Positions 13,721 to 51,288 of a stretch of 64,000 bases of DNA are shown here, one piece after another. This DNA comes from Felis catus. Its lineage: Eukaryota. The number at the start of each line of letters is the position of its first letter. Within the stretch, counting starts at the first letter, position 1. The notes below the pieces were generated by a model, which was given only the letters and a program-made list of their open reading frames with translations, was not told the DNA's origin and did no database searches. The stretch is from positions 8,494,001 through 8,558,000 of the forward strand of contig NC_058369.1 in assembly GCF_018350175.1 (NCBI RefSeq), written 5' to 3'. The position numbers were made by a program, and so were the translations under genes.

Positions 13721-13739
13721 TAATCCATAATAAGTATGA

Positions 13740-13860
13740 TTTCGAGCATTTATTGAGCACAGCCCTGCAAGTCACAGGTGCAGGAGGAACTATGGTTTCC
13801 CCATTTTACAGATGGGCAAACTGAGGCACGGAGGTGTTCAGACGCTCGCCCAGGCCGGAG
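13740..13860 (+). mobile_element. MIR element (many more cores, e.g. 231-260, 14340, 15055, 20710, 31360, 45220, 57185)
   Basis: cccattttacagatgggcaaactgaggcac core. Confidence 0.7.
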
Positions 13861-16800
13861 TGATCGCAGGGGTCTCCGAGGCCACTATGGGATGTGCCCT
13901 AGTCCAGGGTGACGGAAGCAGAGGGGTCCAGGGGGGCTCTGAGGGGCCGGGCGATGTGACTGGCGCCCCAGTGAGCCAACCCAGGAGGCTGGCCCGGCCC
14001 GGCTGCTTCTACTGGAAGGAGGATGTGGGGATGTCTTGGTTTACTTGTGGTCTCAAATCTCTCCCCAGAGGTCCCTCTCCCAGCCCCAGTGCAGCAGTCT
14101 TAGAGAATTCTCCAGCCCCCGCTCATCCTCCGGATGTGCCAACCCCTCGCTCGCCGCCACGCCCCCGAGCCTTTGCACTGGCAGGTTCTTCCTCCTGATG
14201 GCCTTTCCAGCCCTGATCAGAAAATGTCCCAGGCAGAACTGGGGGCTGAATAATACGAGAGCACGACTCTACCTTCGGGCTTTTACGTGTGCTGCCCCTC
14301 TTCCCGTGTATGGGTGTCAGCGCTATCCTCACTCTTACGCACGAGGAAACTGAGGCCCAGGGAAGCAGAGGGACTTGCCCTAACTAGGCAAGTGGACCGC
14401 TGTCAGATCCCGAGACCGGAGGAGGGAGGCTTGGATCGTGGGGGAACCCTCATACCCTGCCACTCAGCCCCAAGCTCAAGGGGGCACAGCTGGGCTGCTC
14501 CCAGCCTGGCGTGTGACATGTGTGTCTGTCAGCAGCCCACGCGCTTGCCTGAGTGGTCCGGCCACTTTGACCTGGGAGCTGCCGGGTGTAACCCCGCCCA
14601 GCACTCTCTGCCACGCCCCACCCCGTGTCACCCTCACCCCAACCATCAGCCTCCTGGGCTAAAGTCCCTGCCTCACCTTGGGCTTCTGGGAGCCAGGCTG
14701 GTCAAGAAACATGGAGACGAGCAAAGATTGGTGGATTTCTCCCCCTTTCCAGCCCCGGCCCCCTCATACCTGGTCTCCTGGCTCCTGCCCTCACCCCTCG
14801 AAGTCGGGTCTCCCTTCAGGGTCCAGAAGGAGCCTGGGAACACCAGAGTCAGATCGGGTCCCTCCTCCGCTTAGAATTGTTAAAGTCCTTCCCAAGGCCC
14901 GGGAGAGGCCGTGCGTGCGTGACCCGCCCTTGTCACCTCCCCCACTACAGCTGCCCACCCCCTCAACACCCTCTGAACACTAGAGCACAGCTCCAACTTT
15001 GCACATGCCGTTCCCCTTCCCGCGTAGGGGTGCCATCACCACCCCCTCTCTTACGGATGAGAAAACTGAGGCCCAGAGCAGCAGGGCGACTTGCCCAGTT
15101 TCACCCGGTGAGTCAGCGTCAGATCTGTGATTCCAGATTTGTCACCCAGGGAGCCCGCCCCGGGGAAATGTTTGTTTCTAAATAACCGACAGAGTCCCGG
15201 CCCCGGGCCAGGCTGTGGGACCCAGGGTAAATCTCTCAACCTCTCTGAACCTCCATTTCCTCATCTGCCCCATGAGGGCTTGCGGCCCGGCACAGCATGA
15301 GGCACAGACATCGGGAGCTCAGAGCTCCAGGCCCTTGGGGGAGCTGATGCCACACGGGAGCCGGCGGGGACTATGAACCCAGCGATTCGAAGCCCTGTCT
15401 GGGTCAAGAGGCTGCTTCAAAGACCCTTCCAAGTAAAGGCCATGCCCCCCCCAGCTGTCCGCCTGGAGCCTGCTGCCCCACTGGTGCCTACCAGACCTGA
15501 TTGGCGGGGCAGTTCCTCTCCAGGGTATGCCAGGCCTGACTCAGCCAGGCGGGGCTAGGGTGACCCAGGCAGCTGCTCAAACAGAGGCCAAGCTTGATGG
15601 GGACTTTGGCCTCCTCTGGCTGCAGTGAGCAACAGTCTGTAGGATATGGGGGGAAGCACCTGTGTACCTGGGAGGAGGCACAGCACGGGTCCAGGTGGGA
15701 GACGGCTGGGCTGCGGACAGGTGGTCGAACCTCCGTGCCAGTGAGGGGGCGGAGCTGAAGATGATCTCTCTTCACGCCGATGCCCCCTGCTGTTCCCACC
15801 ACCTAGAATGCTGTTCCACTCACTCCTTGTCCGCTTGACCCCTTCTTCATCCCTTCAGTCTCAGCTTGGACATCTCTGCCTCCTACAGCTGCTTGTGCAT
15901 CCCCAATCACACCGGGTCTAAGTGGCCGGCCATTCGTCTCCAAGAGGTCCCCACCCCCGGGCACATCGCTGGCACGATGTGAATATCTCTTTCTAGCCTC
16001 TTTCTCCTCCATTCCTCTGACGTGCTGCTCAGTGTTTGTTCCAGGACGTCACTGTTTGAGTCCGTGTAGCATTATAGCGTTCTCGCCTCTCTTTCTGTGT
16101 GGGGTGGGAGGCCGCTGCCTGCACACCTCGGCACAGGCCGTACCCCCTTCCGGAACACTGTTTCCCCTACTCTGCACCTGAGCGAACTCCTAACTTCCAT
16201 TCATTCTTAGATCTCATGCTTCTTGGAAGCCTTCCTTGGCCACCTCCCTTCCCTGCCCAAGCTGGCTCAGGGGTTCCTCTGGGACCTCCTGCCTCCAGCC
16301 CCTGGGGTTCCCCCTCACAGCCCCCCGATCACCCTCGGTTGTAACGGCCTGATTCCATGATGGCCGCCTCTCCCACTCATAAGTCAGCTTCATGAGGACA
16401 AGGATTTTTCTCTGCTTGATTCATTGCTGTGTCCCCAACGCCTAGCATGGGGCTGTGCATATAGTAGGTGTCCAATAAGAGAATGAATGAGGCAGAGTGG
16501 TGCAGGGGTCCAGTGGCCAGAGGACCCCGATGCCCCTCTGTCCCCTAGTGTCTACCGTTTCCACCATCAGTGTGGTGGGAGAAGCCAGCCTGATGGCGGG
16601 GGTCAGGGGGAGGATCAATGTCTCAGCTGTCCAACCCGGGTGAGGGGCGCTGGGGGCAGGTAGAAGAAAGCTGAAGTGGGCACCCACTGCCCCCTGGTGC
16701 CCATGACAGGAATAGCAGGATCCGCCAGCTCAGGACATTTGCCCCGCCCATCTACTGCCCATAGGCAGGGCTCGCTCTTTCCACAAGGAAAGGGAATTGG

Positions 16801-26074: not shown

Positions 26075-27749
26075 GAGAGGCCGAGACCGGAGCCTGGTCC
26101 TTGCAGGGACGCCGGGGCGGGGCGGGGACTTGGGGTGGGGGGTGGTGGGACTGCCTCTGGGGCGGGGCTTCGGAGGAGGTACCTCACCCGCCAGGCCTAG
26201 GGTCCCACTTTTCCTCCAGCCACCCCCCCCCCCCCCCCCCCGCATGCTCTCCTTCGGCCTCCACTCTGCCTCCCGTCCTCCCTGCCCTTACTTGTGTTCC
26301 ATTTTCCTGCCCTCTGCGCCACCCCTCTCCCTTCCTCCTTTGCGCCAACACTTTCCTGCCCACTTTTGCCCACATTTTCACGCCCTCATGCGCATCCCTC
26401 GCATCTCCATTTTTCTCGCCCTCCTTTGCGTCCCCGCTTTCGGGCCCTCAGCCCCTGGCTGTTAGGCTCCTTATTTCAAATGACCTTTTAGAGAAAGTCA
26501 TGGAAGGACACACTCCTAGCCGTGAATGTGGCCTGTCGTCCAGGGAGGAGGCAGTGACTCCTACATGAACATCTTTAGTTCCACATATTCCAAAGAGCAG
26601 ACAGTTTGACAAACATTTGTTATTTAAATGTAAAGTATTTTCTCCCTTTGAGCTGAGCCCTTTGTAGGGGCGGGGGCGGTCACAGAAGATTCTGAAAGTC
26701 CTGAGCCCTCCAAGGACCTGCTCACACACACCCTCCAACCCAGGGCTGGATAAAGGGGGCACATGAGTGGAGTAGCACGGACCTGGGGGGGGGGGCAGGG
26801 AGACAATGTGGGCTAAGGGCTGCAGGAGCTGGGGGGGAGCCCTCAATGCCAAGTGCATAATTTTTGCTCTGAAATGCCTGCTGTGGGTCTGTCATCGTCG
26901 AGAAAGGCCCAGTGATCAATGGCACAGGGCTCGAGGGAACCTGCTTCACCTGCTATGGCTGAGCAGCCTTCCGAGGGAGAAAGGACAGGTTTGGGCCGAA
27001 ATGCGGAAGTGGGGCCGGAGTTGGCAGGGTGGAGGGGTGTCAGAGGTTGCCACGTTCATGTCCCTCTTGGAGCTTCAAAGCCCAGCCTTGACTGACCTTG
27101 CTTCCTGTGTGGCTTTGGGCAGTTACCTTGGCCTCTGAGCCCCGTGAGAGGAATGAGTTCAGTGAGCTGATGTGTAGGCAGGCAGAGGCTTAGGGGACCC
27201 CATGGCTTGTAACTAGATGCTGCTTCATGGAGCTTCATTCACTCATTCATTTATTCCACATCAGTTTCTTGAGCACCTACTGTGTACCAGGCCTTGGGAA
27301 CGCAACCGTGACTAGGACAGCCCAGGACCCCACCCACTTGGAGCCCCCAGCATAGCGGGGTTATTAACCATAAGAGTGGTCAGTGCTGAGCACTATACCT
27401 ACGGGGCCCCGGTGGCACCTAGGGGGTACCAGGGCAGCACATCGTGCCTTTTCTCCACCCCTGGTGGAGAACGAGGAGCCCGCAGGGGCATTTCGGGGCA
27501 TCTGCTTCCCTGGCACTGGGAGCCTTTGCTCCAGCATCCAGTTGTGATGTGATAAAAGCTTATGAAGGAGGAGAGGTAACTGCTGGGGCCCCCTCCCTGG
27601 CAGACGATCAGACTGCCAGGAGAGCGGGGGGCACAGCAAACCAGCCTGGGTGCCCCCGACCCCGGCCCTATACCATCTGGGGAGACCGTAGCCCAGGGGT
27701 TTAGGAGAGATGCTGACTTCAACCTCCGGAGCACCCCAGTCTGGCTGAC

Positions 27750-27818
27750 ACGGCTGAAATGCACACTCCCTACTCTTCCCGGAAGAGACTGTTATCTTTC
27801 TTCAATGGCTTCACGGCG
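27750..27818 (+). pseudogene. TSPAN16: TSPAN16 exon 1 remnant (69 nt; ACG at the ancestral ATG position)
   Basis: ACG GCT GAA ATG CAC ACT CCC TAC TCT TCC ... TTC ACG GCG|gtaagt. Confidence 0.88.
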
Positions 27819-29101
27819 GTAAGTATGTCACCACCCAGACCCTGGGGCTTTGCCGCCCTTCCTCCATAGCTGTCTCCCTCAAAGACAGAAATAAGTTGAT
27901 CCAAATTTCACCGGCATCCGGATCGGTGGTCTCCGGGGAAGCAGGAGGGATGTAGGGCAGACGGACGAGGAGCAGGACAGGTTGCGAACGGGTGTAGGCT
28001 CCATGGACCCAGAGTTGGTGAAATCAAGCACAGAAGAGTGTGATGGGGGAGGGGGGCCGGGTTGGCCGTGGAGGAGCTCGGCTCTAAGTCAAATCTTGCG
28101 GAAAATTAAGTTGTTTGGGAAGGGCAAAAGGGAGGGGGTATTTGCCCGGTCCTTTACATTTTTCGAAAAAGACTTTTTTTTCTTACTATGAAAGTGACCC
28201 AGAATGTACCTCATTAAAGAAGCAATTGTTTTGGTAGCAGAATCGCACTAAGGAAAGACTTCCAGGAAAAAAAAAGAAGGATATTAAAGACCACGCTTCA
28301 TCTTGTTACCTGTGATGTAACATTTTCACGGGAGTTAAATGAGACAAGTACATTTCTTTCCTTTTTTTTTCAAGTACATTTCTTTTTTAAAGCAGGCTCC
28401 ACGTGCGGCGCCTGGGTGGCTCAGTCGGTTAAGCATCCAACGCTTGATTTCAGCTTGGGTCACGATCTCACGGTTCATGGGATCAAGCTCCTCATGGAGC
28501 CCCGCAGGGGGCTCTGCACTCACCGCCGGGGGGCTGCTTGGGCCTCTTTCTCTCCCTCTCTCTCTGCCCTTCCCCCACTCGTGAGCACATACTCTCTCTC
28601 AAGATAAAGAAGCATTTAAAAAAAATTTTTTATTACATTTATTTATGTTTGAGAGACAGAGAGAGACAGAGCACAAGTGGGGGAGGGGCAGAGAGAGAAC
28701 GAGACACAGAATCCGAAGCAGGCTCCAGGCTCTGGGCCGTCAGCGCAGAGCCTGACGCGGGGCTCGAACTCACGAGCCGAGAGATCATGACCTGAGCGGA
28801 AGTCGGATGCTTAACTGACTGAGCCACCCAGGCACCCCTTTTATTTTTTATTTTTAAATGTTTATTTATTTTTGAGACAGAGAGAGACAGAGCGTGAACA
28901 GGGGATGGGCAGAGAGAGGGAGACACAGAATCTGAAACGGGCTCCAGGCTCTGAGCTGTCAGCACAGAGCCTGACGCGGGGCTCGAACTCATGAACTGTG
29001 AGATCATGACCTGAGCCGAGGTCGGCCGCTTAACGACTGAGCCACCCAGGCGCCCCAAAACCTTTAACATTTTAAACATGAACTGCGAAGGGTCCTCCCG
29101 C

Positions 29102-29125
29102 GCACACACACACACACACACACAC
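29102..29125. repeat. (CA)n microsatellite
   Basis: gcacacacacacacacacacacac. Confidence 0.9.
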
Positions 29126-29314
29126 GTCTGTTGCCTGGCAACCATATATGAGCCGATCTCTCCACATCCTCGCTAACTCTGGGTACACGGGTATTATCAT
29201 TTTTTAATGTTTTTGCTGACTTTACCCGCCTTTGCTCTTCTCCCCTCCCCTGGGAGAGCTCCATTTGTATACAACTGACAGACTGTTTTTCCCTGTCTGA
29301 CTCCTGTCCCAAAG

Positions 29315-29512
29315 ATATCTGGTGTGGTCCTCACTGGCCGGGGCATCCATGGCAGCTTCAGAGGGGCTGTCCTGACGAGGGTCCTCGCGCTGCCCTCCGC
29401 ATACCTCCTTCACGTTGGCTCCCTGTGCCCGGCAATGAGCTACCTCACGGGGCCGCTTGGCTTTGCCGGGTGGTCTGGAGCAACCAAAGGAAGCAGAGAC
29501 ACTCTCTTGTTT
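29315..29512 (+). pseudogene. TSPAN16: TSPAN16 exon 2 remnant (198 nt, frame intact)
   Basis: ccaaag|ISGVVLTGRGIHGSFRGAVLTRVLALPSAYLLHVGSLCPAMSYLTGPLGFAGWSGATKGSRDTLLF|gtaagt. Confidence 0.9.
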
Positions 29513-29639
29513 GTAAGTCGGATCTGCACTCAGACCCCAAAGTACCCTCCCGTGTGAATCCTTCCTCGCGCGCATCACAGCCCCCTGGCGGCAGGCATCC
29601 CCTACTCTTCAGCGTTTGTGGTCTCATACGAAGGCATCA

Positions 29640-30000
29640 GAATGCATCCGTGTTCCTCCTTTATGATGTATCTCGGTCGGGACTCCTCTCCCACCCAAGG
29701 CCATAAGTTACAGTCTCCCGGGTCTTCTTCCCATAATTTTAAATCTTGCTTTCTCACTTTTAGCTCTTTGGCTTTTGGGAGTTTTATTATCGGAGCGTGG
29801 TGTGAGGTAGGGGTCAGTCCTCTCCCGCCTCCATTTTTCTTGGGTCTTTTCTGGGCACGCCGGTCTGTGTCATCAGCCCGTGTGTACGTTCCCACTCACG
29901 CAACACTGTGGCCACTGTCATGGGTGTGCAACAAGAGTTTTGAGCACGATCGTGCAGACGGCGTGTTGCAGATTGTACGTGTCTTGCCCCATCCGGCCTC
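29640..30000 (-). mobile_element. Old L1 ORF2 fragment
   Basis: Antisense L1-like phrases (ggtgtgaggtaggggtc...ccactgtcatgggtgtgcaacaagagttttgag). Confidence 0.55.
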
Positions 30001-30797
30001 GGCTAACCCCCCAAAGTCTGGCCCCCAGTCTCCCCACTCCCATTTGCCTTAGAATCGTGTCTGAGTGGATTATCCCACCCTAGGTAAAATTTGTCTCCAG
30101 CATTTTTGTTTTGTTTTCTTTTGTTTTCCTTCCTCCACTGTGTTGCTGCAAAACTCTGGTTCAGTGTGGGGGGTTTCCGGGAGACCCTCAATACGGTCAT
30201 CTCCCAGAGCGTAAACCACCTCCAGGATTAAAAGCACCCCGCCCCCACTCCCCTCCTCCCTGAAGCTCTATCATCTTGATTCCTCAGTTACTCCCTTCAG
30301 CAAATATTTATTGGACAGGTCCCGTGCCTGAAATATTTCATTTCCTTTTCAATCTGATGCGGACGCTATTTGCTAGTTTATTTATAGTTTAACTTGGAGG
30401 AATCCGCGTGCTCTCCCTCACACGCCACGTCCAACCCATCAGCAAATCCGATTGACCTTACCCTTAGTACCTGTCCCTCCAAAGCCTCTGAGAACTCAAA
30501 AAAAGCAAACTGAAGGGGGCAGTCGGTTGAGCATTGGACTCTTGCTTTGGGTTCAGGCCATGATCCCAAAGTCGTGGAACAGAGCCCAGTGTTGGGCTGT
30601 GCGCTGAGCACGGGGCCTGCTTAGGATTCTCTCTCTCTCTCCCTCGGTTCTCTCCCCCACTGTCTCTGTCTTCTTAAAAAAAAGAAAAAAGAAAAATTAA
30701 ATTAAAAAAAGAAAAGAAAAGCGAAATCATTTTGATGGTGTGGGGAGCCACAGAGGATTCTGAGAAGAGGTAGGAGCCCTGACTCAGGGACTCACGG

Positions 30798-30813
30798 GCG
30801 CCCTCTGGTGGCC
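30798..30813 (-). promoter_or_regulatory. CTCF consensus motif
   Basis: GGCCACCAGAGGGCGC on the minus strand; motif match only. Confidence 0.65.
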
Positions 30814-31965
30814 CTTGGGGGAACGGCGTGGGGAGACCGCTCTGGAGGGACTGTGCTGGTCCAGGTGGGAGACGGTGGGGGCTGGGAAGCATGAGGCTGC
30901 AGAGGGGAGGAGAAGGGGGCAGATTAGGGGTAGGTTCTGAAAATGGAACCTATCAAGGACATACAGACGCCTGGATATCAGTACTCTGGCCACCTCGGTC
31001 ACCGAGAGGCGGGGACATGGTAATAACATTAATCCTCGCTCTCTGTCCCATGAGCCGCTAGTCTAGGGTTCCACAACTGCTAAGCCCTGCATCCGTGTTT
31101 GTCCTTGTGGGTCCCTGGATGTGTACCCGCTGCTGTGCCTTCCTGCCTTTCTTAGCTAGATAAGGCCAGCCACGGGCCGGTCTGGCAACTCCAAGCCTGG
31201 ATGTGGAAACAGATTTTAAAAATCATGATCATAACAGGCAAAGACGGGAATAGATGAAAGGGGAGCCAGGAGCTGACCTTCCTTTGCCCCCGTCTGGCCC
31301 CCAGAAGCTCTGCAGAACTCACTGACGCCCCTGGAGCTGGTCCAACCCCCACATTGTACAAATGGGGAAACTGAGGCCCGGGCTGAGCAGCAGTTTCTCC
31401 TTGAGGGGTAACTTGGAGACATCTCCTCTGTTTGCTGCCTGTCTCATTGTTTTCCCCTGGGCTGGTGAATCTTGTCTGAAACATAAGCCAGCAGACCTAA
31501 GTCCCCCCCCCACCACCCTGTAGCCACCAACCTGTCCCCCCGTGTCTTCCCTACAGTCCCCTTTACCTCTTCCCCCCTTTGCAAAGGTTTTCAGCCCACT
31601 TCTCCTCCCCTCCTCTTGCCTCTGTTCTGTCCTTCCAACCCTCCCTCCTGCTTCCTCCATGGGCGCACAGCCTTTATTGACCTGGAGGTCCCTCATAGGT
31701 CTTCCTGATGCCCAGAAAGTTCTGGGCATGAAACGGAGGTCCAGCTAGTGGCTCCCAAGAAAACCTCGGTGCCAACATCCTGGCCAAATGCAGGAAAATG
31801 ACACACAGAGGAAATAACCCCCACACCCCACCCAGGCTGAGTTCTTTCAAACTGAAGAGGCTACGTGGCCTGGGAATGAGGGGAAGAGGGACAGGCCCCT
31901 CCCCTGCAGGGACAAGGTTGCACAGGCTCCCAGCCCCCTCCCTCCCTTCCCTCCGTGTCTTCCAA

Positions 31966-32031
31966 TGTTTCCTGTTCGTGGTTATCATTCTCATCGCTGA
32001 AATCACAGTGGTCCTCACCTTCTTCCCCATG
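31966..32031 (+). pseudogene. TSPAN16: TSPAN16 exon 3 remnant (66 nt; acceptor AA)
   Basis: Pyrimidine tract ending cttccaa|CFLFVVIILIAEITVVLTFFPM|gtaagt (TM3-like). Confidence 0.85.
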
Positions 32032-32659
32032 GTAAGTACAATGTTGCCTCTCCCACGGCACATGACAAATAAATCGAATCAGTAGAGGCACTGCCCCTCC
32101 CTCCCCCACTCAGTGATACCTGGCCCACGGGTCCCTGGGACGGGATACTGGGTCTCCACAAATGGGGTGAGGAGCCAGAAACCTCCGCTGTCCCCTCAAA
32201 GCCCTCAAGAGACTGGCCGAGTTGATTTCACCATCTCTGCTTCTCTCCTGCATTTGGTGGTAAGGTATCAGAAAGGAATGGGGGAAAAAAATAAGACGAA
32301 AAATAAATTAAAAATAAAGGTAATGGGAAAAGCGGTAAAATCTGTTGGGGTTTTGAAACGTGTTAGAAACAGAGGGCTGTTTAGCAAAATCCGTCAAGAT
32401 GATGAGGCGTGGATGCTTTGACCCAACTGTCCCATCTCTAGGAATTATCCAAGGATTTGCTTGCTCAGGTGCAGAAGGACATATAGCTCAGGGCGTGCAA
32501 AAGACTGCCACGGGCCTCGTAAGCCTCAGGAGGAGGGTGGCTAATTTATAATAATGCATACAAGGAAGTCCAATGCAGGGGGAAAGAAGGAAGTAGGAGG
32601 CTCCCCATGCACGAGGTGGTGCCTTCTCCGGGACAAGACGCTCTCCTCCATTGCATCAA

Positions 32660-33000
32660 CCCCCCCAGAGGTAGACCCTGAGACGAGGTTCTGTAGGTTC
32701 ATGGTTTATTAGAGAGGTGGTCCCAAGAAGCACCTGTAGGGGACAGGGGAAGTGAGGCAGGGAAGGGGACGCAGCCCTTAAAGGGTGACACTGCAGGGCT
32801 GCCGGGCTCATCGAATGTGTGCCCCCACAGGGGACAATGTTGACGTACCTCCCATCAGGATTGCCTGAGGGCCGCCCCCAGGGCACCTGTGGGCTGAGAG
32901 GCCACAGAGAGCCAGCCCTGGGTTGCTGGCCCCGTGTGCACAGAAATGACAAATGCCGCGGGGATGTGAGCAGGGCCCCGAGAGCAATTTCTACTCTTGT
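32660..33000. mobile_element. Old MLT1-like LTR fragment (another at about 37700-38188)
   Basis: agaccctgagacgaggttc...gtttattagagaggtggtcccaagaagc; the second copy has ctgggaaatgtagtttgcagg. Confidence 0.5.
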
Positions 33001-33171
33001 TAAGAACAGCCAGATGCCTAGGGCGCCTGGGTGGCTGGGTCGGTTAAGCAGCTGACTTCAGCTCAGGTCAGGATCTCACAGTTCGTGAGTTCGAGCCCTG
33101 CGTCAGGCTCTCCGCTGTCTGCTCGGAGCCCGCTTTGGATTCTGTGTCTCCTGCTCTCTGTGCTCCTCCCC

Positions 33172-33204
<33 letters not shown>

Positions 33205-33939
33205 AAAACAAAGAAACATTAAAAAAAAAAAAGTTTAAAAAATAATAAAAAGAACAGCCAGATGCCGACCAGTGAGAATAGCTACAAAGCAAGGAGAGGA
33301 ATGATGAGAATATGCTTTGCTTTGACACACATTGAATACCTCTTTTGGGACACAGGAAACAGTAACAGTCAGCCGCGGCCGAGGGGGAGGCACTTGTTGG
33401 CTGGGAGAAAAAGGTGGGAGGGAGACTTGGTCGCCGCGTCGCCTTCTGTGCTCTGTGGATGTTGTGCCACGTGACTGCTCCACCTCGTCCAAAAAGCCTG
33501 TTGTATTTAGACCCTTATTTAAAAAAAAAAAAAAAAAAATAGAAAATTACATTCGCCCCTTGTGTGCGGAGACCGATTCCGCGGCTAAAGATGATCGGAG
33601 GCTTTAATGGAGTTACAGCCAAATCGGGGGTGTAGCAGGCCCGTGGGCGATTCAGAAGAGCAGACCATTCAGGTTTGTGATGGGTACAACCAGATGCAAG
33701 AGCTCAAGACCCACGCTCTTCTCTGGGGGGGGGGGGGGGGTGATGGCAGCCAGGATTTATCCTCCTTCAGTGCAGACCCAGAGCTCAGGCAGGGCATGGG
33801 CTGTGAAGGGGGCAGAAGGAGGCAGAAGGAGGCAGAAGGGACACCCCCGCCTCGCCGCTCTGTCCCCGAGAAACCTCACTCACCGAGCGGGGCACCTTGC
33901 GCTGCCGTGTGTCCGTCACTTCCCTGTTTCCTCTCTGAG

Positions 33940-34045
33940 GTTCAAGAAGTGGCCTTGGAGCACGTCTTCGCGACCCTGAGGAAGAATCTATAATTACAGT
34001 GAGCCAGACGACTGTTCCGCGGAATGGAACTTGGTCACGGGGACG
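33940..34045 (+). pseudogene. TSPAN16: TSPAN16 exon 4 remnant (106 nt, frameshifted)
   Basis: VQEVALEHVFATLRKNL* then, in a shifted frame, YSEPDDCSAEWNLVTGT|gtgagg. Confidence 0.9.
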
Positions 34046-35881
34046 GTGAGGCTCGCACCTTGTGTGTGTTATGGTGGCAAAAGACACACCACATGAAGTT
34101 ACCCATCTCAACCGTTAGAAAAATTAAAAAAAAATTTTTTTTAATGTTTATTCATTTTTTTGAGAGACAGAGCGCAAGCAGGGGAGGGGCGGAGAGAGAG
34201 GGAGACTCAGAATCCGAGGCAGGCTCCAGGCTCCGAGCTGCCAGCACAGAGCCCGACGCGGGGCTCGAACTCGCGAACCGCGAGATCAGGACCTGAGCCG
34301 AAGTCGGACGCTCAGCGTCTTGGTGTTTAAGGAACAGGACCGGCTGGTCTGTGGCGTCTAAGCTCTTGGGGCGGGTGGCTTAGCAGCGTCCCTGAAGCCA
34401 GGGAGGGTTTGGAAGGAGAGAGCATTCCCTGTCTCTAGGAGTGTGTCACATCCGGGGCTTGGGCCCGGGAACTGCTGTGGGGCCACGTTCAGGCTTGGGA
34501 GGGGGCCCCACCATGGGTAGGCGGCCTCCCGCATCCCAGTTTTGGCTCCCGAGGCTCGAGACGGGAGAGAACGTCTCTCATACCTTCGTACGGCCCTTGT
34601 CCTGATATTTATTGAGCACCTACTGCGTGCTGGGCACTGTTCAGGGCTCTGGGGACACAGCAGGGCACAGAGCAAAATCCTCGCCCGGTGTTCCTGGCGC
34701 TTAAGTGGGGACACGGACGAGAAATCAGTAAGTGAGCGTGGGTGTCCGAGGTGATACGTGCCGTGAAGAAGAACAAGGCAGGGAAAGGGCAGAGAGAGTG
34801 AGTGTCCGTTAGTCAAAGGTGCTGTGTGTCATCCATTGTCACCACACAGTGGGATGCTCTGTCCTGGCCCCTTTGCGGGGGTCCTGCCATGCGTTCCGGC
34901 CAATGAGCCGTGGCCGGAAGTCTTGTGGGTCGCTTCTGGGCCAAATTATTTAATTGCCTGTGCAGGGCCCCCCCCCCCCCCCCGAGAGCTCTCTTTCCTC
35001 CTGCCACGACCATAGGACATCTGGACGGTGGCTGCTTCCCCAGCCTGAGTCCCTGAGTCATTCTGATAAAGCAGAGCCCCCCTGCCAAGCCGTGAGGGGC
35101 GTGTAGCATGCGTGGGAAGTGAACTGTGGAGATTGAGGGGCCATCTGTTACGCAGCATCACCTGACCCCGCCTGGCTGATACAGGGGCTGTGGCTAACTT
35201 GGAAAGAGGGTTCAGGGCAGGCCTTCCCCGGGCGGGACGTTTGAATAGAGAGCTGAATGCAAAGTGAGTGAGAGAGCCGAGCGGGTATTTGAGGGCATAG
35301 CGTTCCAGAAAGAGGGAACAGCCTGTATAAAGGCCCCGGGGCTGGAGCTGGCTAAGTGCGTTTGAGGAACCGTGAGGGGACCAGCGTGGCTGGCGCTGAG
35401 TGAGTAAGAGGGAGAGTGGAGGGAGATGAGGGCCTGGGGGTGACTGGGCAGGTCGCGCAGGGGCTCGCGGGCCATGGTGAGGGGTTCAGCTTTTACCACC
35501 CAGTAAGATGACTAGGCACCGAGGGCGCCTGGGTGATTCAGTCATTCCGCATCTTGACTTTGGCTCAGGCCAGGATCGCACGGTTCACGAGTTGGAGTCC
35601 CACGCTGGGTGAGCTCGTGCCCCGTTTCTCTCTCTCTCTCTCTGGTCCTCGCTCACTTGCACCCTCTCGCTCTCAAAAAAAAAAAAAAAAAAAAGATGAA
35701 CACCCAGGGAGGGTTCTGAGCCTTGAACGGCTAGAGGGAGGGAGGCATTTAGCGCGAGAGCCCCCGGCAGAGGCCTATGTTGCCGACTCTAGACCGTAGC
35801 CATGGTGACCATGCTTTCTATTGTGTTCATTATTTCCAGAGTTGAAAGGGCACCTTCAAGGGCCTATCCTCCTCTCTGCAG

Positions 35882-35999
35882 CTAAAGTGCTGTGGGGCAA
35901 GGAACTACACAGGCTTTTCTGAGTCTTCCTTTGAAATGACTGCTGGTCCCTCGGACCCCAGGGGCTGCAGCCCACAAGGGTGACACCATCCACCAGGGG
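35882..35999 (+). pseudogene. TSPAN16: TSPAN16 exon 5 remnant (118 nt, internal deletion)
   Basis: ctgcag|LKCCGARNYTGFSESSFEMTAGPSDPRGCSPQG*; in another frame DTIHQG|gtcact. Confidence 0.87.
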
Positions 36000-38188
36000 G
36001 TCACTCAAGATTTTGTTGGACCTAGATAGACCTCCCCACCCCCACCCCCACACACCTCTGCCCAGGGCTGGTGACTTTTATAAAAATTGCCTATTTACAG
36101 GAAGCCCAGCAAAAAAGGTCAAGGGAGGAAGAACATAACTGGAGTTGGGTGTTCAGCTCATTCTGACCCCACAGCCTTGTGGGGGGGGGGGGGGTCAAGG
36201 TTACCACGCCCGTTTCACAGACGGGGCAACCGAGGCTTGGGGGAAGGGACGGCTCAAGGTCACGTGGCCTCGGCAGAGCTGGGTTGGAAGCTGGGTTCGG
36301 GGCTACACTGCCTGCCTTACAGAGGGCCTGAAATATAACGATAGCGAGGAACAGAGATCACTGTAGGATAGTGACCAGGCACTCAGTTTGTGAGTTCAGT
36401 CCCCATCACATACCTTGAGGTGGGGACTGCTTTGCTCCCAATTTGCAGATGAGGAGACCGAGGCACAGAAAGCTTCCGAACAGCGAATCGGCACCTTGAC
36501 AGTGTTACTGCTGTGTTTCTCACCTGTGTTCGCCACTCAAATGTGGGCTCGGCCGAGGCAGGGGGTACGTCTTGTTTCATACATTGCTGGGCTCCCAGCA
36601 GGCACTCAATAAATGCCTATTAAGTGAAGGGGGCGGGCCAAGAGCAAGGTCAAGGCAGCTCAGGCTTCCGGAAGCAAGAACTGCCAGGGGCCTAGAGAGC
36701 GGAGCTTCTCTGTGACTGTCCCCTCACCTGCAGGTGGCGGTTCCGCCCACACACACCGGGGCTTCCGCTCCTTGGCTCTATGACCCAGGTCAGGACCCAA
36801 GCCTCCCTCTCATTTGTAAGTTTGCGCTGGCCCGTTGTTGAGTCGCTCGTGATGGGGAGGCCATCCGAGGCTTCGCACCATGTCCTACCCAACTGCAAGC
36901 CATGAACTGATTCTGGGAAGTGACTGTCACCAACGCCAGGGAGGTCCTGCCCAAGGGAAGGGTCCCAGGGAGGCAGTGGTGGAAAGGGGATGACTTCTCC
37001 GTCATCTTCTTTGAGTTGCTCTCCCTCTCTCTCTGCCCCTCCCCTGCTCGCGTGTACGTACACACACTCTCTCAAAATAAATAAACTTTAAAAAGGAAGA
37101 AAATCCTTTGAAAAATAAACAATAGAAGCTTAAAAGAAACGAGGCATGCAAAGAAACAAGAAAGTGGGGAGAGAGAGAGACAGAGACAGACAGACAGACA
37201 GCATGAGTGGGGGAGGGGCAGAGAGAGAGTGAGGGAGACACAGAATCCGGAGCAGGCTCCAGGCTCTGGGCTGTCAGTGCAGAGCTCGACGCGGGGGCTT
37301 GAGCCCGAGAACCCCTGATCTGTATTTTTTAAATAGGCATTTTTTTCATTGTACAAATTTATGTTGCATCTATGTTTACAAACGATACCACACCCTCTTC
37401 CCCAAAGAGGTCATGATAGTCAGAGGGAACAGAATCGAGCCCCGAGGTGGTCCTTTTAAGAAATTTTCAAGGGCGGGGCACCTGGGTGGCTCAGTCAGTG
37501 AAGAGACCAGCTTCGGCTCAGGTCATGATCTCACCGTTCACGAGTTCAAGCCCCGCATCAGGCTCTCTGCTGTCAGCACAGAGCCCGCTTCGGATCCTCT
37601 GTCTCCCTCTTTCTCTGCTCCTCCCCAACTCATGCTCCATTTCTCTGTCTCTCAAAAATAGACATTTAAAAAAGAAAAAAAGGAGTTTTCAGGGGCTTCC
37701 TTGCTGAGGTGCGGGCAGGGTTAAGAAAAACAAGGGATGAGGCACCGAGAGGCTAGCAACATGGGGAGCTTTTTACTTCTCCTAAGTCTGAAGGGGTAAG
37801 AGAAGAGGGACCATCCGACCTCCGGCTGCAGTCTTGGAGGGCTCAGGATGGGCAGAAGAAAGGAGGGAGTGGGGAAGAAATACTCCAACTTTTCCTCCAG
37901 CCTCTCCCATCTCCTGAAGGTGTTTCCTATTGGCCAAAGCTAACAGGAAGTGGAAGGGCGGGAGATTCTGGGAAATGTAGTTTGCAGGACCCAGGGCAGA
38001 GCGGAAGAGAGTGAAGATAGGTGGGAAACAAGGGGAAAAGGACCAACGCTCATGATGAAAGGCCTCCACTTTCTGCTTCTAAGACTGATTGTGTAAACCG
38101 AGCAAAGTCGCTCCAGCCTGACCATGAGGGACCTTCAGCTCTGTGTCAAACCCTGCCCTTTACTTTTCTGGAAGAAGATGCTTCCCTT

Positions 38189-38318
38189 NNNNNNNNNNNN
38201 NNNNNNNNNNNNNNNNNNNNNNNNNNNNNNNNNNNNNNNNNNNNNNNNNNNNNNNNNNNNNNNNNNNNNNNNNNNNNNNNNNNNNNNNNNNNNNNNNNNN
38301 NNNNNNNNNNNNNNNNNN
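38189..38318. other. Assembly gap (130 N)
   Basis: N run just upstream of the TSPAN16 terminal exon; the right flank is mid-SINE. Confidence 1.
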
Positions 38319-38448
38319 GAGCCCGACTCGGGGCTCGAACTCATGGACTGCGAGATCATGCCCTGAGCCGAAACTAAGAGTCTGACGCTCAACCGACGGA
38401 CCCTCCCAGGTGCCCCTGGTTCAATATTTCTTTCTTCTCCCCTCCCAG

Positions 38449-38496
38449 CTGCCAGGAATTCTTGACACTTTGCTTCTATTCATCAAACTAGGCTGA
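38449..38496 (+). pseudogene. TSPAN16: TSPAN16 terminal coding exon remnant
   Basis: cctcccag|LPGILDTLLLFIKLG* (TGA 38494-38496). Confidence 0.85.
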
Positions 38497-38593
38497 CAGA
38501 CCTGGGGACAGGCCATCTGGCCCACCGGGCTGCTGGAGATCTTGCCTCATTGTTTCTCTGTGGCACTCACTGCTTTTTGGAAGGGAGATTGGT

Positions 38594-38599
38594 AATAAA
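38594..38599 (+). terminator. Poly(A) signal of TSPAN16
   Basis: AATAAA about 100 nt after the stop codon. Confidence 0.65.
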
Positions 38600-39139
38600 A
38601 GATTTGGGAAGGCACTGTTAGCCTGACCCCTTTTTCCTTCCTTCTATTTTTTTTTTTTTTATACCAACTGGCAGTGATTTTAGCCCCAAGGACCTAAAAG
38701 GGATAACATGGCCTCCTTCTCATGAAATTGTCTTGTTTTTAAAATTATTTTGTGGAAAGAAATCTGTTTTTGAACGTTTATTTATTTTTGAGAGAGTGCA
38801 AGCAGGGGTGGGGCAGAGAGAGGGGGACAGAGGATCTGAGGCGGGCTGTGTGCCGACAGCAGAGAGCCCGACTCGGGGCTCAAACTCACGAACCTCGAGA
38901 TCATGACCTGAGCCCAAGTTGGATGCTCAACCGACTGAGCCACCCAGACGCCCCAGGAGAACTTTTGAGATGTGCTGTCTTAGTAACTTTCAAATATGAA
39001 TTAGGGTATTATTAATTACAGCCCGCATGCTGTACGTTACATCCCCAGGACTTACACATTTGGTTTCTTTGAATCGGATCCAAATAACGTGCACACATCA
39101 TGTCTTCTTGTCATGTCTCCTAAATCCCTTTTACCCAAA

Positions 39140-44533: not shown

Positions 44534-44721
44534 CTAGCAGCTGCAACCGCTGGGCTCGGGGGGCGGGGTGTCCCCCAAGGCCGGGCCTTTCCCATTGCTG
44601 CCCGGGCCGGAGCTGGGTTCTAGGGACTCATTCATCTTCTCACAGATGACGTCCACCAGGCGCTCGAAGACCTGCTTCACGTTGATGTTCTCTTTGGCAC
44701 TGGCCTCGAAGAACTCGAAAC
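44534..44721 (-). CDS. RAB3D: RAB3D last coding exon (188 nt CDS)
   Basis: [61 protein letters not shown]. Confidence 0.96.
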
Positions 44722-47700
44722 CTGGATGGACACAGGGTGGGAACACCAGTAAGCCCGGGCTGTGGCATCACCCAAACATGGCTTCCGAGCCCAGGTCTGC
44801 CCTTCGTGCAGCCGTGGGACCTTGGCTGAGCGCCTCGATCTCTCGAAGCCTCAGTTTGCTCATCAATAGGATGGGAACGATGCTGACGCTGATAAGACCT
44901 GTGGCGGCAGCCCCCCGTGGGGACTATTCTAAGAATCTCCTTGTCACAGAGCAGTGGCCGCAGGTGACGTTCTGGTGGCCAGCAGGCACGTGAGGAACGG
45001 CAGGTTTCCCAGGGGTGTACGCGATGCATACCGTTCTTGACCCACAGAACGGGCTAAAGATGGTAATAAGGATAATACTAAATAACAACAACAACAATAA
45101 TAATAATAATAATAAGCAGTGCTGACGTCATCCTTACTATGGCGAGCGCTTTTCTCAGCATTTTCTGCAAACTGACTCATTTCATGATGCTCTGAGGTTC
45201 ATGCTATCAGAGTCCGTTTTACAAATGAGGAAACCAAGGCACAGAGAGGAAAAGCCACTCATCCAAAGGTATCACACGGCAGAGCTGGGATTCACACCCA
45301 GGCCGCCTGGCTTAAGTGACGATAGTTAATAAACACGAAATACATATTTTGGATCTAAATAAATAAATGATGATAAATATCCCTACGGTCCCACCTTGGG
45401 CCTCAGGAGGGAAGACACGTTGGTTGAGTCCTTCTGGGGAGGAGGACACGAGGGTCCTTTATATATATATATTTTTTAACATTTATTCATTTTAGAGGAA
45501 CGGAGAGACAGAGCATGAGTGGGCAAGGGGCAGAGAGAGAGGGAGACACACAGCCCGACGCGGGGCTTGAATCCATGAACCGTGAGCTCATGACCTGAGC
45601 CGAAGTCAGATGCTTAAGCGATTGAGCCACCCGGGCCCCCCAGGATTTTTTTTTTAGGATTTTATTTAAAAAAATTTTTTTTTCAACGTTTATTTATTTT
45701 TGGGACAGAGAGAGACAGAGCATGAATGGGGGAGGGGCAGAGAGAGAGGGAGACACAGAATCGGAAACAGGCTCCAGGCTCCGAGCCATCAGCCCAGAGC
45801 CCGACGCGGGGCTCGAACTCACGGACCGCGAGATTGTGACCTGGCTGAAGTCGGACGCTTAACCGACTGCGCCGCCCAGGCGCCCCTAGGATTTTATTTT
45901 TAAAGTAATCTCGACACCTAACGTGGGTTCAAACTTACAAGTCTAAGATCAAGAGTCGTATGCTCTACCAACTGAGCCAGCCAAGTGTCCCTGAATATAT
46001 TCTTAGCATCAGAGTGACCAGCATACCTGTCTCTCATTTTAAAAAAGCTTGTCCTGGGGCACCTGGGTGGCTCAGTCGGTTAAGCATCCGACTTTTGATT
46101 TTTGGCTCAGGTCATGATCTCACGGTTTGGGGGTTTGAGCCCCATGTCGGGCTCTGTGCTGACAGTGTGGAGCCTGCTTGGGATCCTCCCTCTCCTTCTC
46201 TCTCTGCCCCTCCCCTGTTCCCTCTCTCTTTCTCTCAAAATAAATAAATAAACTTGAAAAACAAAAAACAAAACAAAACGAAACTTGTCCTCCCAAACGT
46301 GGAAGGTAGTAAATATACTTTGGGGACTTGCCTGTCATCCCTCGGTTACAAAAAGCGGGCTGTCAACCTAAAAATAAGGGCGTACACGTACATGACAAGG
46401 CTTCCCGCACCCCGGAAGGCTGGCTCAGGCTCTGCCTAGGGGTCCCCGATATGTCCGCACCCACCACACCTGCCAAGTTGGGCCAGGGATTCAAACACCC
46501 ACCATACTATGCACACAGCACCGGGCAGACAGGCCTCTCTCCCAGCACCTGTCATGCCGCACTATAAAAATGTAATTGTAATTAAGTAATTACGTGTGTA
46601 ATTACCCATTTACTATCCGTCTCCGCTACTGGTGCGCCAGCTCCAAGGTGGCAGGATTTCTGTCTGCCTCGTCCGGTGCCTGGCCCAGAGCAGGTGCTCA
46701 GAAACTACTTGCTGAATGAATGAATAGATGGATGAACGAACGAACGAATGACAGAGGCAGGGCATGAACTCAGATCTCTTACTCCAAGCCTCGTGATCAT
46801 AAGTGTCACTCCACTGTCCTCCTAAGCAAGACTGGCATTTCCTTATCTGCGTGCAGCTCTGTCTCCAACAATCTTAGTTTTTTTTTTTTTTTAATTTTTT
46901 TTTCAACGTTTTTATTTATTTTTGGGACAGAGAGAGACAGAGCATGAACGGGGGAGGGGCAGAGAGAGAGGGAGACACAGAATCGGAAACAGGCTCCAGG
47001 CTCCGAGCCGTCAGCCCAGAGCCCGACGCAGGGCTCGAACTCCCGGACCGCGAGATCGTGACCTGGCTGAAGTCGGACGCTTAACCGACTGCGCCACCCA
47101 GGCGCACCTTTAGTTTTTTTTTTAATACTTTTTTTTTGCTGATTATAAATATTCAGTGGAGAAATCCACTGAAGAAGTTAGAAACTCCTGAAAACTACCA
47201 AGACAGAAAAGCAACCTGTGATTTTACCATTGAGAAACACTTACTATTGGTGTCTTGATATTTAGCTTTCCGCTATATATTTTTTTAACATAAATACACA
47301 ATCATTGGGGTTGGGTCTGCAGGAGGTATGTGTGCGCGTGTGTGCGTGCTTCTGCGTGTAGTTTTTTTTATTTTTTTAAGTTTTGAGAGAGAGAGAGTGC
47401 AAGCAGGCGAGGGGCAGGGAGAAGAGAGAGGGAGAGAATCCCAAGCAGGGTCCGCGCTGTCAGCACAGAGCCCGACGCAGGGCTTGAACTCACGAACCGT
47501 GAGATCTTGACCTGAACCGCAATCAAGAGTCGGACGCTTAACCGCTGAGCCATCCAGGTACCCCATGTATGTATTCTTTTCCCTACAAAACTGGGGTCAA
47601 ATTCTGCCTCCTGCTCTGTATGTCAATATTTGAAACTTAATGCCAGGTCAGACACCCCCCACCCCCCACTAGATGTTCTCTGCAAGGTGTGGGCAACATC

Positions 47701-50700
47701 CCCAAGTGTTCCAGCCCATGGCGGGGTCATAGCTGATTTTTCCCGGTTCCGGGCAAATTGGGGATCTAGTCCCCAGCAGCAAAAGCTGACTCCCCAGCAT
47801 ACCTGCAATTGAGAGCCAAAGCCAGAGCTCCCAGAAAACACAGGGAACAAAGGAGCAGGTTAAATGATACCGTGAGGGAGCAAAGAGGCAAATCTCAAAT
47901 GGGAAATATTCCATAGAACAAAGACCCAGTTTGTCCAACAAACAGATGGTAAGAAGAAAAAAAAAGAGAGAGAGAGAGAGAGGGGCGCCCAGGTGGCTCA
48001 GTTGGTTAAGCGTCTGACTTCGGCTCAGGTCATGATCTCACGGTTTGTGGGTTTGAGCCCCACATCGAGCTCTGTGCTGACAGTTCAGAGTCTGGAGCCT
48101 GCTTCGGATTCTGTCTCTCTGCCCCTCCCCCGCTTGTGCTCTGTTTCTCTGTGTCTCTCAAAAATAAATAAACATTAAAAAAAAATTAAAAAATGACAGA
48201 GCTATAATTAAAAAGAGAGAGAGATAGAGAGGAAACCGTTCTAGTCCAGGGTCCCTAACCTTTCTCTGTAAAGGGCCAGATAGTAACTACTTTAGGATTT
48301 GCAGGTTGTTATAAGGTGCCTAGAGTTTTTTGTACAAAGCATCAATAATAGTTCACAATCACGCTAGCTGAGATTCCGATACATTCTACGTGCGTGCCCG
48401 GCTGTGATACCTGCTTCGTAGGTCGTAACTCATTTAACCCCCGCGACAACTTGACGCGGTGAGGCCGTTACTAAATCCACTTCACACAAGAGGGAGTGTG
48501 GGCCCAGAGGGCTGAAGTCACCAACACAAGAGCACAAACCGATCGAGAAATAATACGAGTTAACGTTCAAACGGGGCCAGTGTTGGCTTATTTCATCTTT
48601 CTAACAGCGCTAGGAAGTAGGCACAGTTTTCACTCTGTTTCCCAGATGGAGAAATGGAAGCACAGAGAGGGGAGGTGATGTGTCCAAGGTCACACAGCTA
48701 GTGGGTTGCATAATGGGATTCTAGCTCCTGAGTCTGGGTCCTTAACCCACCTTCCCCTACAGTGGTCACACCGTCTCCCACAACGGGAGTCCTAGGCAGG
48801 GCTTAGGATACTAGAATACTCCAGGCCAGATTCCCTTTGAGCTTAAATTTCCATTTACCTGATTCAAAAAGGTAGGCTGAAAAAGCCCTCCTTCCATCCT
48901 AGTACCCTGGCCCCCAGTTCTCGGACACACACAGATCATTGCTGTGACTAGATCCTTTGTATCCTCCCGGAGTTTCTTCAGGCAAACATAAATATATATT
49001 CTTATTCTTACCCTTTTTAGACACTAATGCAGGGGTCAGAAAACTTTAAGTCACAGGCAAGATCTGGCCCATTGCCTGTTTTTATAAACAAAGTTTCGAT
49101 GACAGTCACACTCACTCATTCAGTTATTTTCTGTGGTAGCTTTCAAACAGAGCTGAGGGGCGACAGAGACCCTAAGGCTGAAAATATTTCCTATCTGGCC
49201 CTTTAAGAAAAGATTGGCTGATGGGGCACCTGGGTGGCTCAGGTGTCCAAGTCTAGATTTCGGCTCAGGTCATGATCTCTCAGGGTTGTGAGTCTAAGCC
49301 CTGTGCTGGGCTCCACGCAGGGCTTGAAGCCTACGTAAGGGGCGCCTGGGTGGCTCAGTCAGTTACAGCATCGGACTCCGGCTCAGGTCACGATCTCACA
49401 GTTCGTGAGTTAGAGCCCTGGGTCGGGCTCTATGCTGACCGCTCAGAGTCTGGAGCCTGCTTGGGATTCTGTGTCTCCCTCTCTCTCTGCCCCTCCCTTG
49501 CTCACACTCTGTCTCTCTCTCTCTCTCTAGTTCAAGAATAAATAAACATTAAACAAAATGTAAAAAATAGATAAGTAAAGTTAAAAAATGACAACAACAC
49601 TTGCTGAGCCGCAGACTAAAGGAAGCATCCAAGCCCATTTTTCCACAGTAAGCATATAGCCCAGAGACCTTGCCAGAGCAGAGAATAAGGAAAGTGCTCG
49701 CCCTTTTTCACAGCTGTGTAGTATTCCACAACGTGACTATACTTTATGTTTGGCTGCTTCCCCCACCGTGAGACATTTAAGAGGTTACCGAGGTTCCCCT
49801 CCTGCCAACAGCGCTGTGACTCGATATCCTTGCCACTTCCCACATGCGTGGCATGTTTGTAGGATACATTTCCAGGAGTGTTTTGCGGCAGGGAGGTGGG
49901 GAATACCTGTAACTGAATTCTCTGAAATTAAATGCGGAAGGTGCCGCACATATGGGTATTTTTCCTAGCAGATCCTCAAAGGGCAAAGGGTTGCTGACTG
50001 CGGTTGGACCTGGAACCCAAGGGCGGGGACTGGGGTTTGGTCTGAGGGGTCCGGGGCCTGGGGCCCAGGCTGGGCACTAACCAAGGTCATCAGCGAGCCT
50101 CCGGCCGTCCTCGGTAGGCACAACACGCTCATCCTCCAGGTCGCACTTGTTCCCCACGAGGATGACCTGCGCGTTGTCCCAGGAGTAGGTCTTGATCTGA
50201 GTGGCCCTGTGGAGTGTGAGGGCCATTAGGCTAGAGATTGAGGGTCAGGGGGAGAGGGCGAAGGTCAGGGTGTCAGTGGTCAGCAAGCACTCACCAGTCC
50301 TGCACAGCGGTGAAGGACTCCTGGTTGGCAACATCATACATGAGCAGGAAGCCCATGGCGCCGCGGTAGTAGGCCGTGGTGATCGTGCGGTAGCGCTCCT
50401 GGCCCGCCGTGTCCTAGGAACACAGCAGGGTCAGGCGGCTAGGTGCTACTCTGCTCCCCACTCCCCCCCTGCAGGGTCCCAAGCGGGGCACCACCCCGTG
50501 CTCATAGCCCCTGTCTGCCGGAAGACGTGGCCCTGCCCCTGAGGAATTGCCAGTCTGAGGCATCAGTGCCTCCCACAGTCTTGTAAGCTCCCTCGACCTC
50601 GTCTCCAAGACCAACGTGGCGACCAGGGTCAGAGAGCGCCGTCTTGACGCAGACACCCCGGGGCTCAATACCATGACAATCATCACCAGCAGCCTCGCTG

Positions 50701-51288
50701 GGAGGGAGAGCATCTCCGAAGAGCGCAGAGGCTCAGCGGGGGGACCCTGGGCTCGCCCCTGCGATGGTACCCAAACCTCTGCCCCGCTGGTCACCAGGAC
50801 ATCTAACCTGCCTTGGATGGGCACTGTCTGCCCCTCAGACCCCACAGGGCAGGGCCTACCCCCCTCATCTTGATGAATTCATCTCATAGATACTATCCCC
50901 CTCCTCTTCACCTCTACCCCAAGCCCCCTCCCCAACCCTGGACCCCTCCCCACAGCCCCTACACCCTATCATGGACATCCTCGGAGGAATCCCAGGCCCT
51001 CCCGGCCCGCAGACAGACTCCCGTCCTTCGCCACAGACCCACAACAGCCGCCCGGCCCACCCAGATCTGCAGCTTGATCCTCTTGTCATGGCGATAGACC
51101 GTCTTGACCTTGAAGTCAATGCCCACGGTGCTGACGAAGGCAGGTGTGAAGGAGTCGTCCGCGTAGCGGAACAGGAAGGACGTCTTGCCCACGCTGCTGT
51201 TGCCGATAAGTAGCAGCTTAAACATGTAGTCGAAGTTCTGGTCTGCTGCATCCCGTGGGCCTGTGGGGGGGTCTCCGGCCGATGCCAT
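44534..51288 (-). CDS. RAB3D: Ras-related protein Rab-3D, 219 aa
   Basis: Exons 51061-51288, 50295-50413, 50082-50206 and 44534-44721 sum to 660 nt. GNSSVGKT P-loop, WDTAGQE, GNKCD, EASAK and C-terminal CSC prenylation motif are present; GT-AG junctions. Confidence 0.98.
45081..45114. repeat. (AAC)n(AAT)n compound microsatellite in RAB3D intron
   Basis: aataacaacaacaacaataataataataataata. Confidence 0.9.
45668..45886 (-). mobile_element. Young SINEC_Fc3-like copy in RAB3D intron, with TSD
   Basis: TSD taggattttattt at 45655-45667 and 45887-45899. Confidence 0.85.
46877..47107 (-). mobile_element. Young SINEC_Fc3-like copy in RAB3D intron
   Basis: Same diagnostic positions; flanked on both sides by cttagtttttttttt. 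Confidence 0.8.
49030..49220. mobile_element. MER58-like DNA transposon relic (second fragment at about 48240-48310)
   Basis: caggggtcagaaaact...ggcccattgcctgtttttataaacaaagttt...ctaaaatatt-like end (ctgaaaatatttcctatctggccctttaagaaaa). Confidence 0.65.
50082..50206 (-). CDS. RAB3D: RAB3D coding exon 3 (125 nt)
   Basis: [42 protein letters not shown]|gttagt. Confidence 0.96.
50295..50413 (-). CDS. RAB3D: RAB3D coding exon 2 (119 nt)
   Basis: [40 protein letters not shown]|gtgagt. Confidence 0.96.
51061..51288 (-). CDS. RAB3D: RAB3D first coding exon (228 nt CDS; exon begins at 51327)
   Basis: [36 protein letters not shown]...IKLQIW|gtgggc; acceptor ttctgcag at 51328. Confidence 0.96.

Follow-up and report, generated by a model that had tools for sequence, protein, structure and literature searches.

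Structure of the TSPAN16 locus in the domestic cat

The window analysed here is a stretch of 64,000 nucleotides of the domestic cat genome (Felis catus, assembly GCF_018350175.1, contig NC_058369.1, positions 8,494,001 to 8,558,000 of the forward strand), and its segment 27750-38496 carries the exons of TSPAN16, the gene for tetraspanin-16, in what is very probably the state of a unitary pseudogene. The exons were aligned at the DNA level to the intact TSPAN16 of the black rhinoceros, which has seven coding exons, all of phase 0, and encodes 244 amino acids (aa). Each exon was compared, together with its flanks, among the window, rhinoceros, hippopotamus, raccoon dog, badger and Weddell seal. 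The loci used for comparison are those of raccoon dog (L006), rhinoceros (L007), badger (L008), Weddell seal (L009), hippopotamus (L010) and African wild dog (L011). The features of the locus are listed below, with TM standing for transmembrane helix and SINE for short interspersed nuclear element.

27750-27818, forward strand: exon 1 remnant; start codon ACG at 27750-52, donor GT kept, next in-frame ATG at 27759
29315-29512, forward strand: exon 2 remnant (TM1, small loop, TM2); 198 nt, open, without insertion or deletion
31966-32031, forward strand: exon 3 remnant (TM3); acceptor AA in place of AG at 31964-65, 9-nt in-frame deletion at 32005
33940-34045, forward strand: exon 4 remnant; net 2-nt deletion at about 33988, leading to TAA at 33991-93
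35882-35999, forward strand: exon 5 remnant (large extracellular loop); 4-nt deletion at 35969, 31-nt deletion at 35982, TGA at 35981-83 in the exon's own frame
36718-36777: exon-6 deletion junction; about 1.7 kb missing relative to rhinoceros, and more relative to canids (blastn)
38189-38318: assembly gap in intron 6, followed by a carnivore SINE fragment at 38319-38416
38449-38496, forward strand: exon 7 remnant (end of TM4 and stop codon); intact, acceptor AG and TGA stop kept
44534-51288, reverse strand: RAB3D, convergent neighbour; open exons (open reading frames) with a Pfam Ras match, used as synteny anchor

Exon identity between window and rhinoceros is 80% overall, and at least seven independent disabling lesions are present at the locus, among them a lost start codon, two frameshifts with stops, a deleted exon and a lost acceptor. 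The start codon reads ATG in rhinoceros, hippopotamus, raccoon dog, badger and seal and ACG in the window, where no in-frame ATG lies upstream of exon 1 and an in-frame TGA is found at 27714. Of all the lesions, the AA acceptor in exon 3 carries the least weight. On its own it would not have been fatal, because 219-aa isoforms that skip this exon have been annotated for human, pig, bats and deer. The 9-nt deletion within exon 3 shortens TM3 by three residues. In exon 5, the 4-nt deletion takes out one cysteine of the conserved PxxCC pair and the 31-nt deletion the next conserved cysteine, and the codons of the CCG motif are still legible but lie downstream of the exon-4 stop. All the lesions named in the initial annotation of this DNA, which had been made from the sequence alone (the ACG start, the AA acceptor, the exon-4 frameshift with its TAA, the exon-5 deletion with its TGA and the missing exon 6), were recovered by the exon alignment.

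Exon 6, coding for the last part of the large loop and the first part of TM4, can be recognised in raccoon dog, African wild dog, badger, Weddell seal, hippopotamus and rhinoceros. It gave no match in the window, nor did badger exon-6 DNA find any match genome-wide (whole-genome searches refer throughout to a 2.43-Gb assembly of 71 contigs). Window positions 36718 and 36777 bracket an interval that corresponds to rhinoceros 13242 to 14983, and because rhinoceros exon 6 (13920-14003) falls inside this missing interval, the exon was removed by the deletion of about 1.7 kb.

The collinearity of the sequence around the run of undetermined bases (N) was assessed with blastn blocks between the window and raccoon dog, badger and rhinoceros. 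Window 37685-38188 corresponds to raccoon dog L006 22726-23260 and window 38417-38600 to L006 23312-23520. The flanks of the gap are likewise collinear in badger L008 and rhinoceros L007, and in all three species they stand only 45-54 nt apart. The segment immediately to the right of the gap (38319-38416) matches SINE copies elsewhere, and the gap itself lies about 130 nt upstream of exon 7. It sits in or beside a SINE insertion of the last intron, and no coding sequence is expected in it, since its flanks are collinear with those of three other species. The idea that exon 6 is hidden in the gap was considered and rejected, as collinearity places the missing exon at 36718/36777. Carnivore SINEs are abundant throughout the window, and an A-rich SINE tail occupies 33203-33260 in intron 3.

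The remnant offers no frame with four transmembrane helices, given the TAA in exon 4, the shortened TM3 and the deletion of exon 6; nor does any frame keep the CCG motif with the conserved large-loop cysteines, the motif lying beyond the stop and two of the cysteine codons being deleted. The longest product that can be read from the ATG at 27759 is 125 aa, or 103 aa when exon 3 is skipped, and these are exactly the figures first proposed for a product ending in exon 4. A stop codon upstream of three further splice junctions is expected to elicit nonsense-mediated decay. Judged from the exons, a frame opened at this ATG would run for 103-125 codons and stop in exon 4, its transcript would probably be cleared by that route, and a four-helix tetraspanin could not be made from the remnant.

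Eight open reading frames that overlap the lesions were submitted to an exact look-up in the contig collection, and none was matched there. Gut metatranscriptome contigs contain 42-63% of the sampled words of 27700-36800, mostly intronic, and they are uninformative on splicing. These contigs more likely derive from carry-over of host DNA, or from unspliced RNA, than from a mature transcript. The public runs that contain the stretch come almost without exception from one organism and from many studies, and several of the RNA runs among them bear the label 'feline metagenome'.

Identity, synteny and copy number

The identity of the gene was examined with a protein search (HMMER) that took the 67-aa piece encoded by exon 2 as query. 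Nineteen matches were obtained at E<=1e-3, and those examined are mammalian TSPAN16 proteins or unnamed TSPAN16-like models. Matches to TSPAN16 proteins ranged from E 8e-25 to 1e-10, and the closest protein, at 88% identity, is from Panthera tigris. Single exon pieces gave zero Pfam matches, being too short and too diverged for this purpose. Canonical TSPAN16 proteins of 244 aa are found in black rhinoceros (P0023), hippopotamus (P0026), the bat Saccopteryx (P0025) and bovids. Felids are represented in the protein search by just two truncated Ensembl models, of 152 aa in tiger and 155 aa in lion, and no felid RefSeq TSPAN16 protein turned up in it.

Gene order points in the same direction as the protein matches. 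The remnant is convergent with RAB3D, an arrangement that is identical at the Weddell seal locus L009, and its introns are collinear with those of four other species, so that the syntenic position first claimed for these exons is borne out. A second copy of TSPAN16, which if intact would by the initial annotation have refuted its reading, was sought in the whole genome with the exon-2 piece and the intact rhinoceros protein as queries. None was found, the searches yielding only weak matches to other tetraspanins. The remnant is accordingly single-copy, it occupies the ancestral place, it keeps its introns, which sets it apart from a processed copy, and the genome has no functional paralogue of it, as is characteristic of a unitary pseudogene. 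The exons of RAB3D (Ras, 50959-51288, reverse strand) and of TMEM205 (DUF4149, 55376-55636, reverse strand) are open and score above the Pfam cut-offs, and hence the assembly is sound in the surroundings of the remnant. Another gap in the assembly, of 140 N, is found at 12611-12750, on the side assigned to DOCK6 in the initial annotation.

Functional mammalian TSPAN16 (tetraspanin-16 or TM4-B), as seen in rhinoceros, hippopotamus, Saccopteryx and human, shares with the cat locus its place convergent with RAB3D, its seven exons and its phase-0 introns. The window differs from it in having lost the start codon, cysteine codons of the large loop, exon 6 and selective constraint, and in carrying a frameshift and a stop in each of exons 4 and 5.

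Loss of selective constraint

The evolution of the coding sequence was followed by comparing nonsynonymous with synonymous codon changes on single branches, with ancestors inferred by parsimony, omega (the dN/dS ratio) computed by the NG86 (Nei-Gojobori) method over about 190-240 codons, and branches compared by Fisher test. The counts for the principal branches are as follows.

Branch to rhinoceros: nonsynonymous to synonymous codons 19:19, omega 0.30
Branch to hippopotamus: 22:20, omega 0.32
Carnivora stem: 11:19, omega 0.16
Carnivoran ancestor to window: 40:7, omega about 1.5

The branch leading to the window departs from the Carnivora stem (40:7 against 11:19, p = 2e-5) and from the rhinoceros and hippopotamus branches taken together (40:7 against 41:39, p = 1e-4). 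Its omega of about 1.5, as opposed to 0.16-0.32 on the functional branches, reveals relaxed constraint and supplies the dN/dS check that had been proposed for this locus. The pattern points to an early release from constraint on the feliform branch, a timing drawn from small counts with a rough method. On the caniform side, omega amounts to 0.32 on the caniform stem, 0.55 on the canid branch, 1.33 on the arctoid stem, 0.80 in badger and 0.76 in seal.

Exon 2, which is still open, has by itself accumulated 18 nonsynonymous changes and one synonymous change since the carnivoran ancestor, as compared with 0:3 on the Carnivora stem. Among these changes are L32R, L62P, C66Y, L70P and Y77S, by which arginine and proline enter membrane helices and conserved cysteine and tyrosine residues are lost. 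The excess consists largely of changes towards G or C (leucine to proline or arginine, tyrosine to histidine, serine to proline), and it may reflect GC-biased gene conversion acting on neutral sequence.

These observations bear directly on the notion that the gene retains a reduced function, either as a short protein of two to three helices translated from the ATG at 27759 or as a non-coding RNA. Exons 1 and 2 are indeed free of insertions and deletions and the ATG is in frame, and Ensembl carries models of 152-155 aa in tiger and lion with partial matches to PF00335. The open exon 2 has nonetheless evolved at 18:1, with arginine and proline placed in helices and conserved tyrosine and cysteine lost, which is unlike a selected protein and hence speaks against a short product maintained by selection. 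Three further splice junctions, moreover, follow the exon-4 stop, an arrangement that on general grounds should expose the transcript to nonsense-mediated decay. We therefore regard a retained function as highly improbable, and continue to read the locus as a unitary pseudogene.

Lion and tiger models and the age of the loss

When the two Panthera models are aligned back to the window, both show the three-residue gap of exon 3. In the lion model (P0022) the frame shifts at exactly 33987/33989, which is the same net 2-nt deletion as in exon 4 of the cat, and the tiger model skips this stretch. Neither has an initiator methionine at the ancestral position, the lion model starting with threonine and the tiger model at the methionine equivalent to 27759, and both end after exon 4. 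Their matches to PF00335 are partial, covering profile positions 2-131 of 225. Because the exon-3 and exon-4 deletions are carried by the lion and tiger models, the decay appears to predate the split of Felis and Panthera. This split is dated to about 11 million years ago.

The Panthera models are also relevant to another explanation of the lesions, namely that they are errors of sequencing or assembly and that the animal itself has an intact gene. Such an explanation could draw on the fact that the lesions are known from one assembly and that the gap at 38189-38318 falls within the span of the gene. It would have to account, however, for at least seven separate lesions of differing kinds, one of them a deletion of about 1.7 kb, and for 9-nt and 2-nt deletions that are reflected in lion and tiger models built from other assemblies. 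Random errors cannot yield a ratio of 40:7 in nonsynonymous to synonymous changes, the gap lies in an intronic SINE, and the exons of RAB3D and TMEM205 are clean. In addition, 14 sequencing runs from nine studies, each either recorded as DNA or guessed to be so, contain 94-95% of the sampled words of 27700-36800, which lends support of a coarse kind only. We attach next to no probability to assembly or sequencing error as the source of the lesions; the view that they are too numerous for it, already expressed when they were first noticed, is upheld by their variety, by the Panthera models and by the substitution pattern.

TSPAN16 in other carnivores

The caniform TSPAN16 protein models are all abnormal, and the DNA of the four loci analysed (L006, L011, L008 and L009) shows lesions proper to each, even though databases list the four genes as 'tetraspanin-16' proteins of 190-250 aa. 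In the canids, raccoon dog and African wild dog, which are represented by independent assemblies, share a deletion of one nucleotide in exon 2 (together with an insertion of six), deletions of one nucleotide in exon 3 and in exon 5, and a deletion of 16 nucleotides in exon 6, and each of the two species has private lesions as well. The badger has lost the exon-3 donor, carries a SINE of about 206 nt inside exon 5 and has a TAG in exon 6. The Weddell seal has lost the exon-1 donor and the stop codon of exon 7, lacks exon 4, and carries a SINE at the exon-2 donor and a TAG inside the CCG motif. The remnants of raccoon dog, African wild dog, badger and seal thus resemble that of the cat in being syntenic, intron-bearing and broken, with omega values of 0.55-1.33, and differ from it in that the ATG and exon 6, both lost in the felid, are retained in all four, and in that the lesions differ by lineage.

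A disabling lesion common to the felid and any caniform, or to canids and arctoids, was sought in every exon and splice site, and none was found; a shared carnivoran coding lesion is thereby rejected. Since no lesion is common to felid and caniforms, and since the Carnivora stem shows purifying selection, the felid loss would seem to be an event of its own. The lineage-specific loss put forward in the initial annotation holds in the sense that an event can be placed on the felid branch without lesions shared with caniforms. It does not hold in the sense of a loss special to felids, the gene being broken also in canids, a mustelid and a phocid.

The distribution of broken genes could alternatively stem from a single loss in the ancestor of Carnivora, for instance through a regulatory lesion that leaves no trace in the exons, the coding lesions representing later decay. 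In keeping with such a scenario, the gene is broken in each of the carnivoran lineages studied (the felid, two canids, the badger and the seal), and the panda model lacks the CCG motif. Against it stand the want of a disabling lesion common to felid and caniform or to canids and arctoids, and the low omega on the Carnivora stem (0.16, from 11:19) and on the caniform stem (0.32), values that derive from small, parsimony-based counts; the canid branch, at only 0.55, also fits a later loss in that group. A single ancestral loss is, in our judgement, unlikely, and several independent losses after a functional carnivoran ancestor constitute the most economical reading. It seems somewhat better than an even proposition that TSPAN16 was under purifying selection in the carnivoran ancestor and was subsequently inactivated at least three times, with separate losses among feliforms (on their branch), among canids and among arctoids.

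Discussion

The evidence gathered above leads us to interpret 27750-38496 as the remnant of an orthologous, single-copy TSPAN16 gene that has become a unitary pseudogene, a reading to which we assign a probability of roughly 0.93. In the course of events that we propose, TSPAN16 would have been functional in the carnivoran ancestor, as the omega of 0.16 on the stem indicates; constraint would have disappeared early on the feliform branch, well before Felis and Panthera separated; and canids and arctoid carnivores would have lost the same gene in separate events.

Several considerations weigh on the other side. Each of the cat lesions rests on a single assembly, the evidence from Panthera consists of Ensembl protein models and not of DNA, and the omega values stem from the parsimony and NG86 procedure applied to a limited number of codons and not from a likelihood codon model. 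The hippopotamus is, besides, an odd outgroup with respect to the exon-3 donor. At its locus L010 (about 9033 and 10827), this donor reads CT and not GT, and the 244-aa product given in the annotation (...PILRDVALEH) is not what direct translation of the locus yields (...PI|VREVALEH). It was because of this oddity that the rhinoceros was chosen as the main intact reference.

The sweet-taste receptor gene TAS1R2 is a classic unitary pseudogene of felids. UGT1A6 has been presented as another (PMC3065456). The TSPAN16 locus resembles both in that a single-copy gene remains in its place with several disabling mutations common to the cat family. It differs in that the losses of UGT1A6 and TAS1R2 are tied to a known trait (drug glucuronidation and sweet taste, respectively), whereas TSPAN16 has no established function and has been lost in carnivores other than felids as well. 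The locus is, in this respect, an ordinary unitary pseudogene of a familiar class, to which the independent decay across Carnivora is a modest addition.

Variation in the presence of TSPAN16 has been reported in other groups. In rodents and sauropsids the gene lacks an annotation or has apparently been lost (PMC4093529, PMC8106303), the apparent loss in sauropsids being noted in PMC8106303, and mammalian TSPAN16 forms a very long branch (PMC2965184). In a 2014 study, cat and dog orthologues were absent from Ensembl and TSPAN16 was read as specific to mammals that bear single young (PMC4093529). That reading is contradicted by the broken gene of the Weddell seal, which bears one pup, and by the proteins of 219 and 251 aa annotated in the litter-bearing pig. 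In human, expression of TSPAN16 is given as blood and testis in a review table (PMC8761850). No description of TSPAN16 decay in felids or other carnivores was found in the literature searched, and what is new here is the finding of a TSPAN16 gene broken by different lesions in each of raccoon dog, African wild dog, badger and Weddell seal, that is, of recurrent loss in Carnivora.

As regards annotation, cat TSPAN16 ought to be classed as a pseudogene, and the 'tetraspanin-16' models of lion, tiger, dog, badger and seal should be taken as patched-up remnants. The finding also bears on the interpretation of human TSPAN16 variants and on the choice of animal models, given that cat, dog and mouse cannot model this gene. 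More generally, a tetraspanin of unestablished function, reported from testis and blood in human, would appear to be dispensable in a whole mammalian order. If the gene was indeed inactivated repeatedly after a functional carnivoran ancestor, on top of its reported absence or apparent loss in rodents and sauropsids, TSPAN16 would rank among the more loss-prone tetraspanins, and its history would point to a shared biological change in carnivorans that made the gene dispensable.

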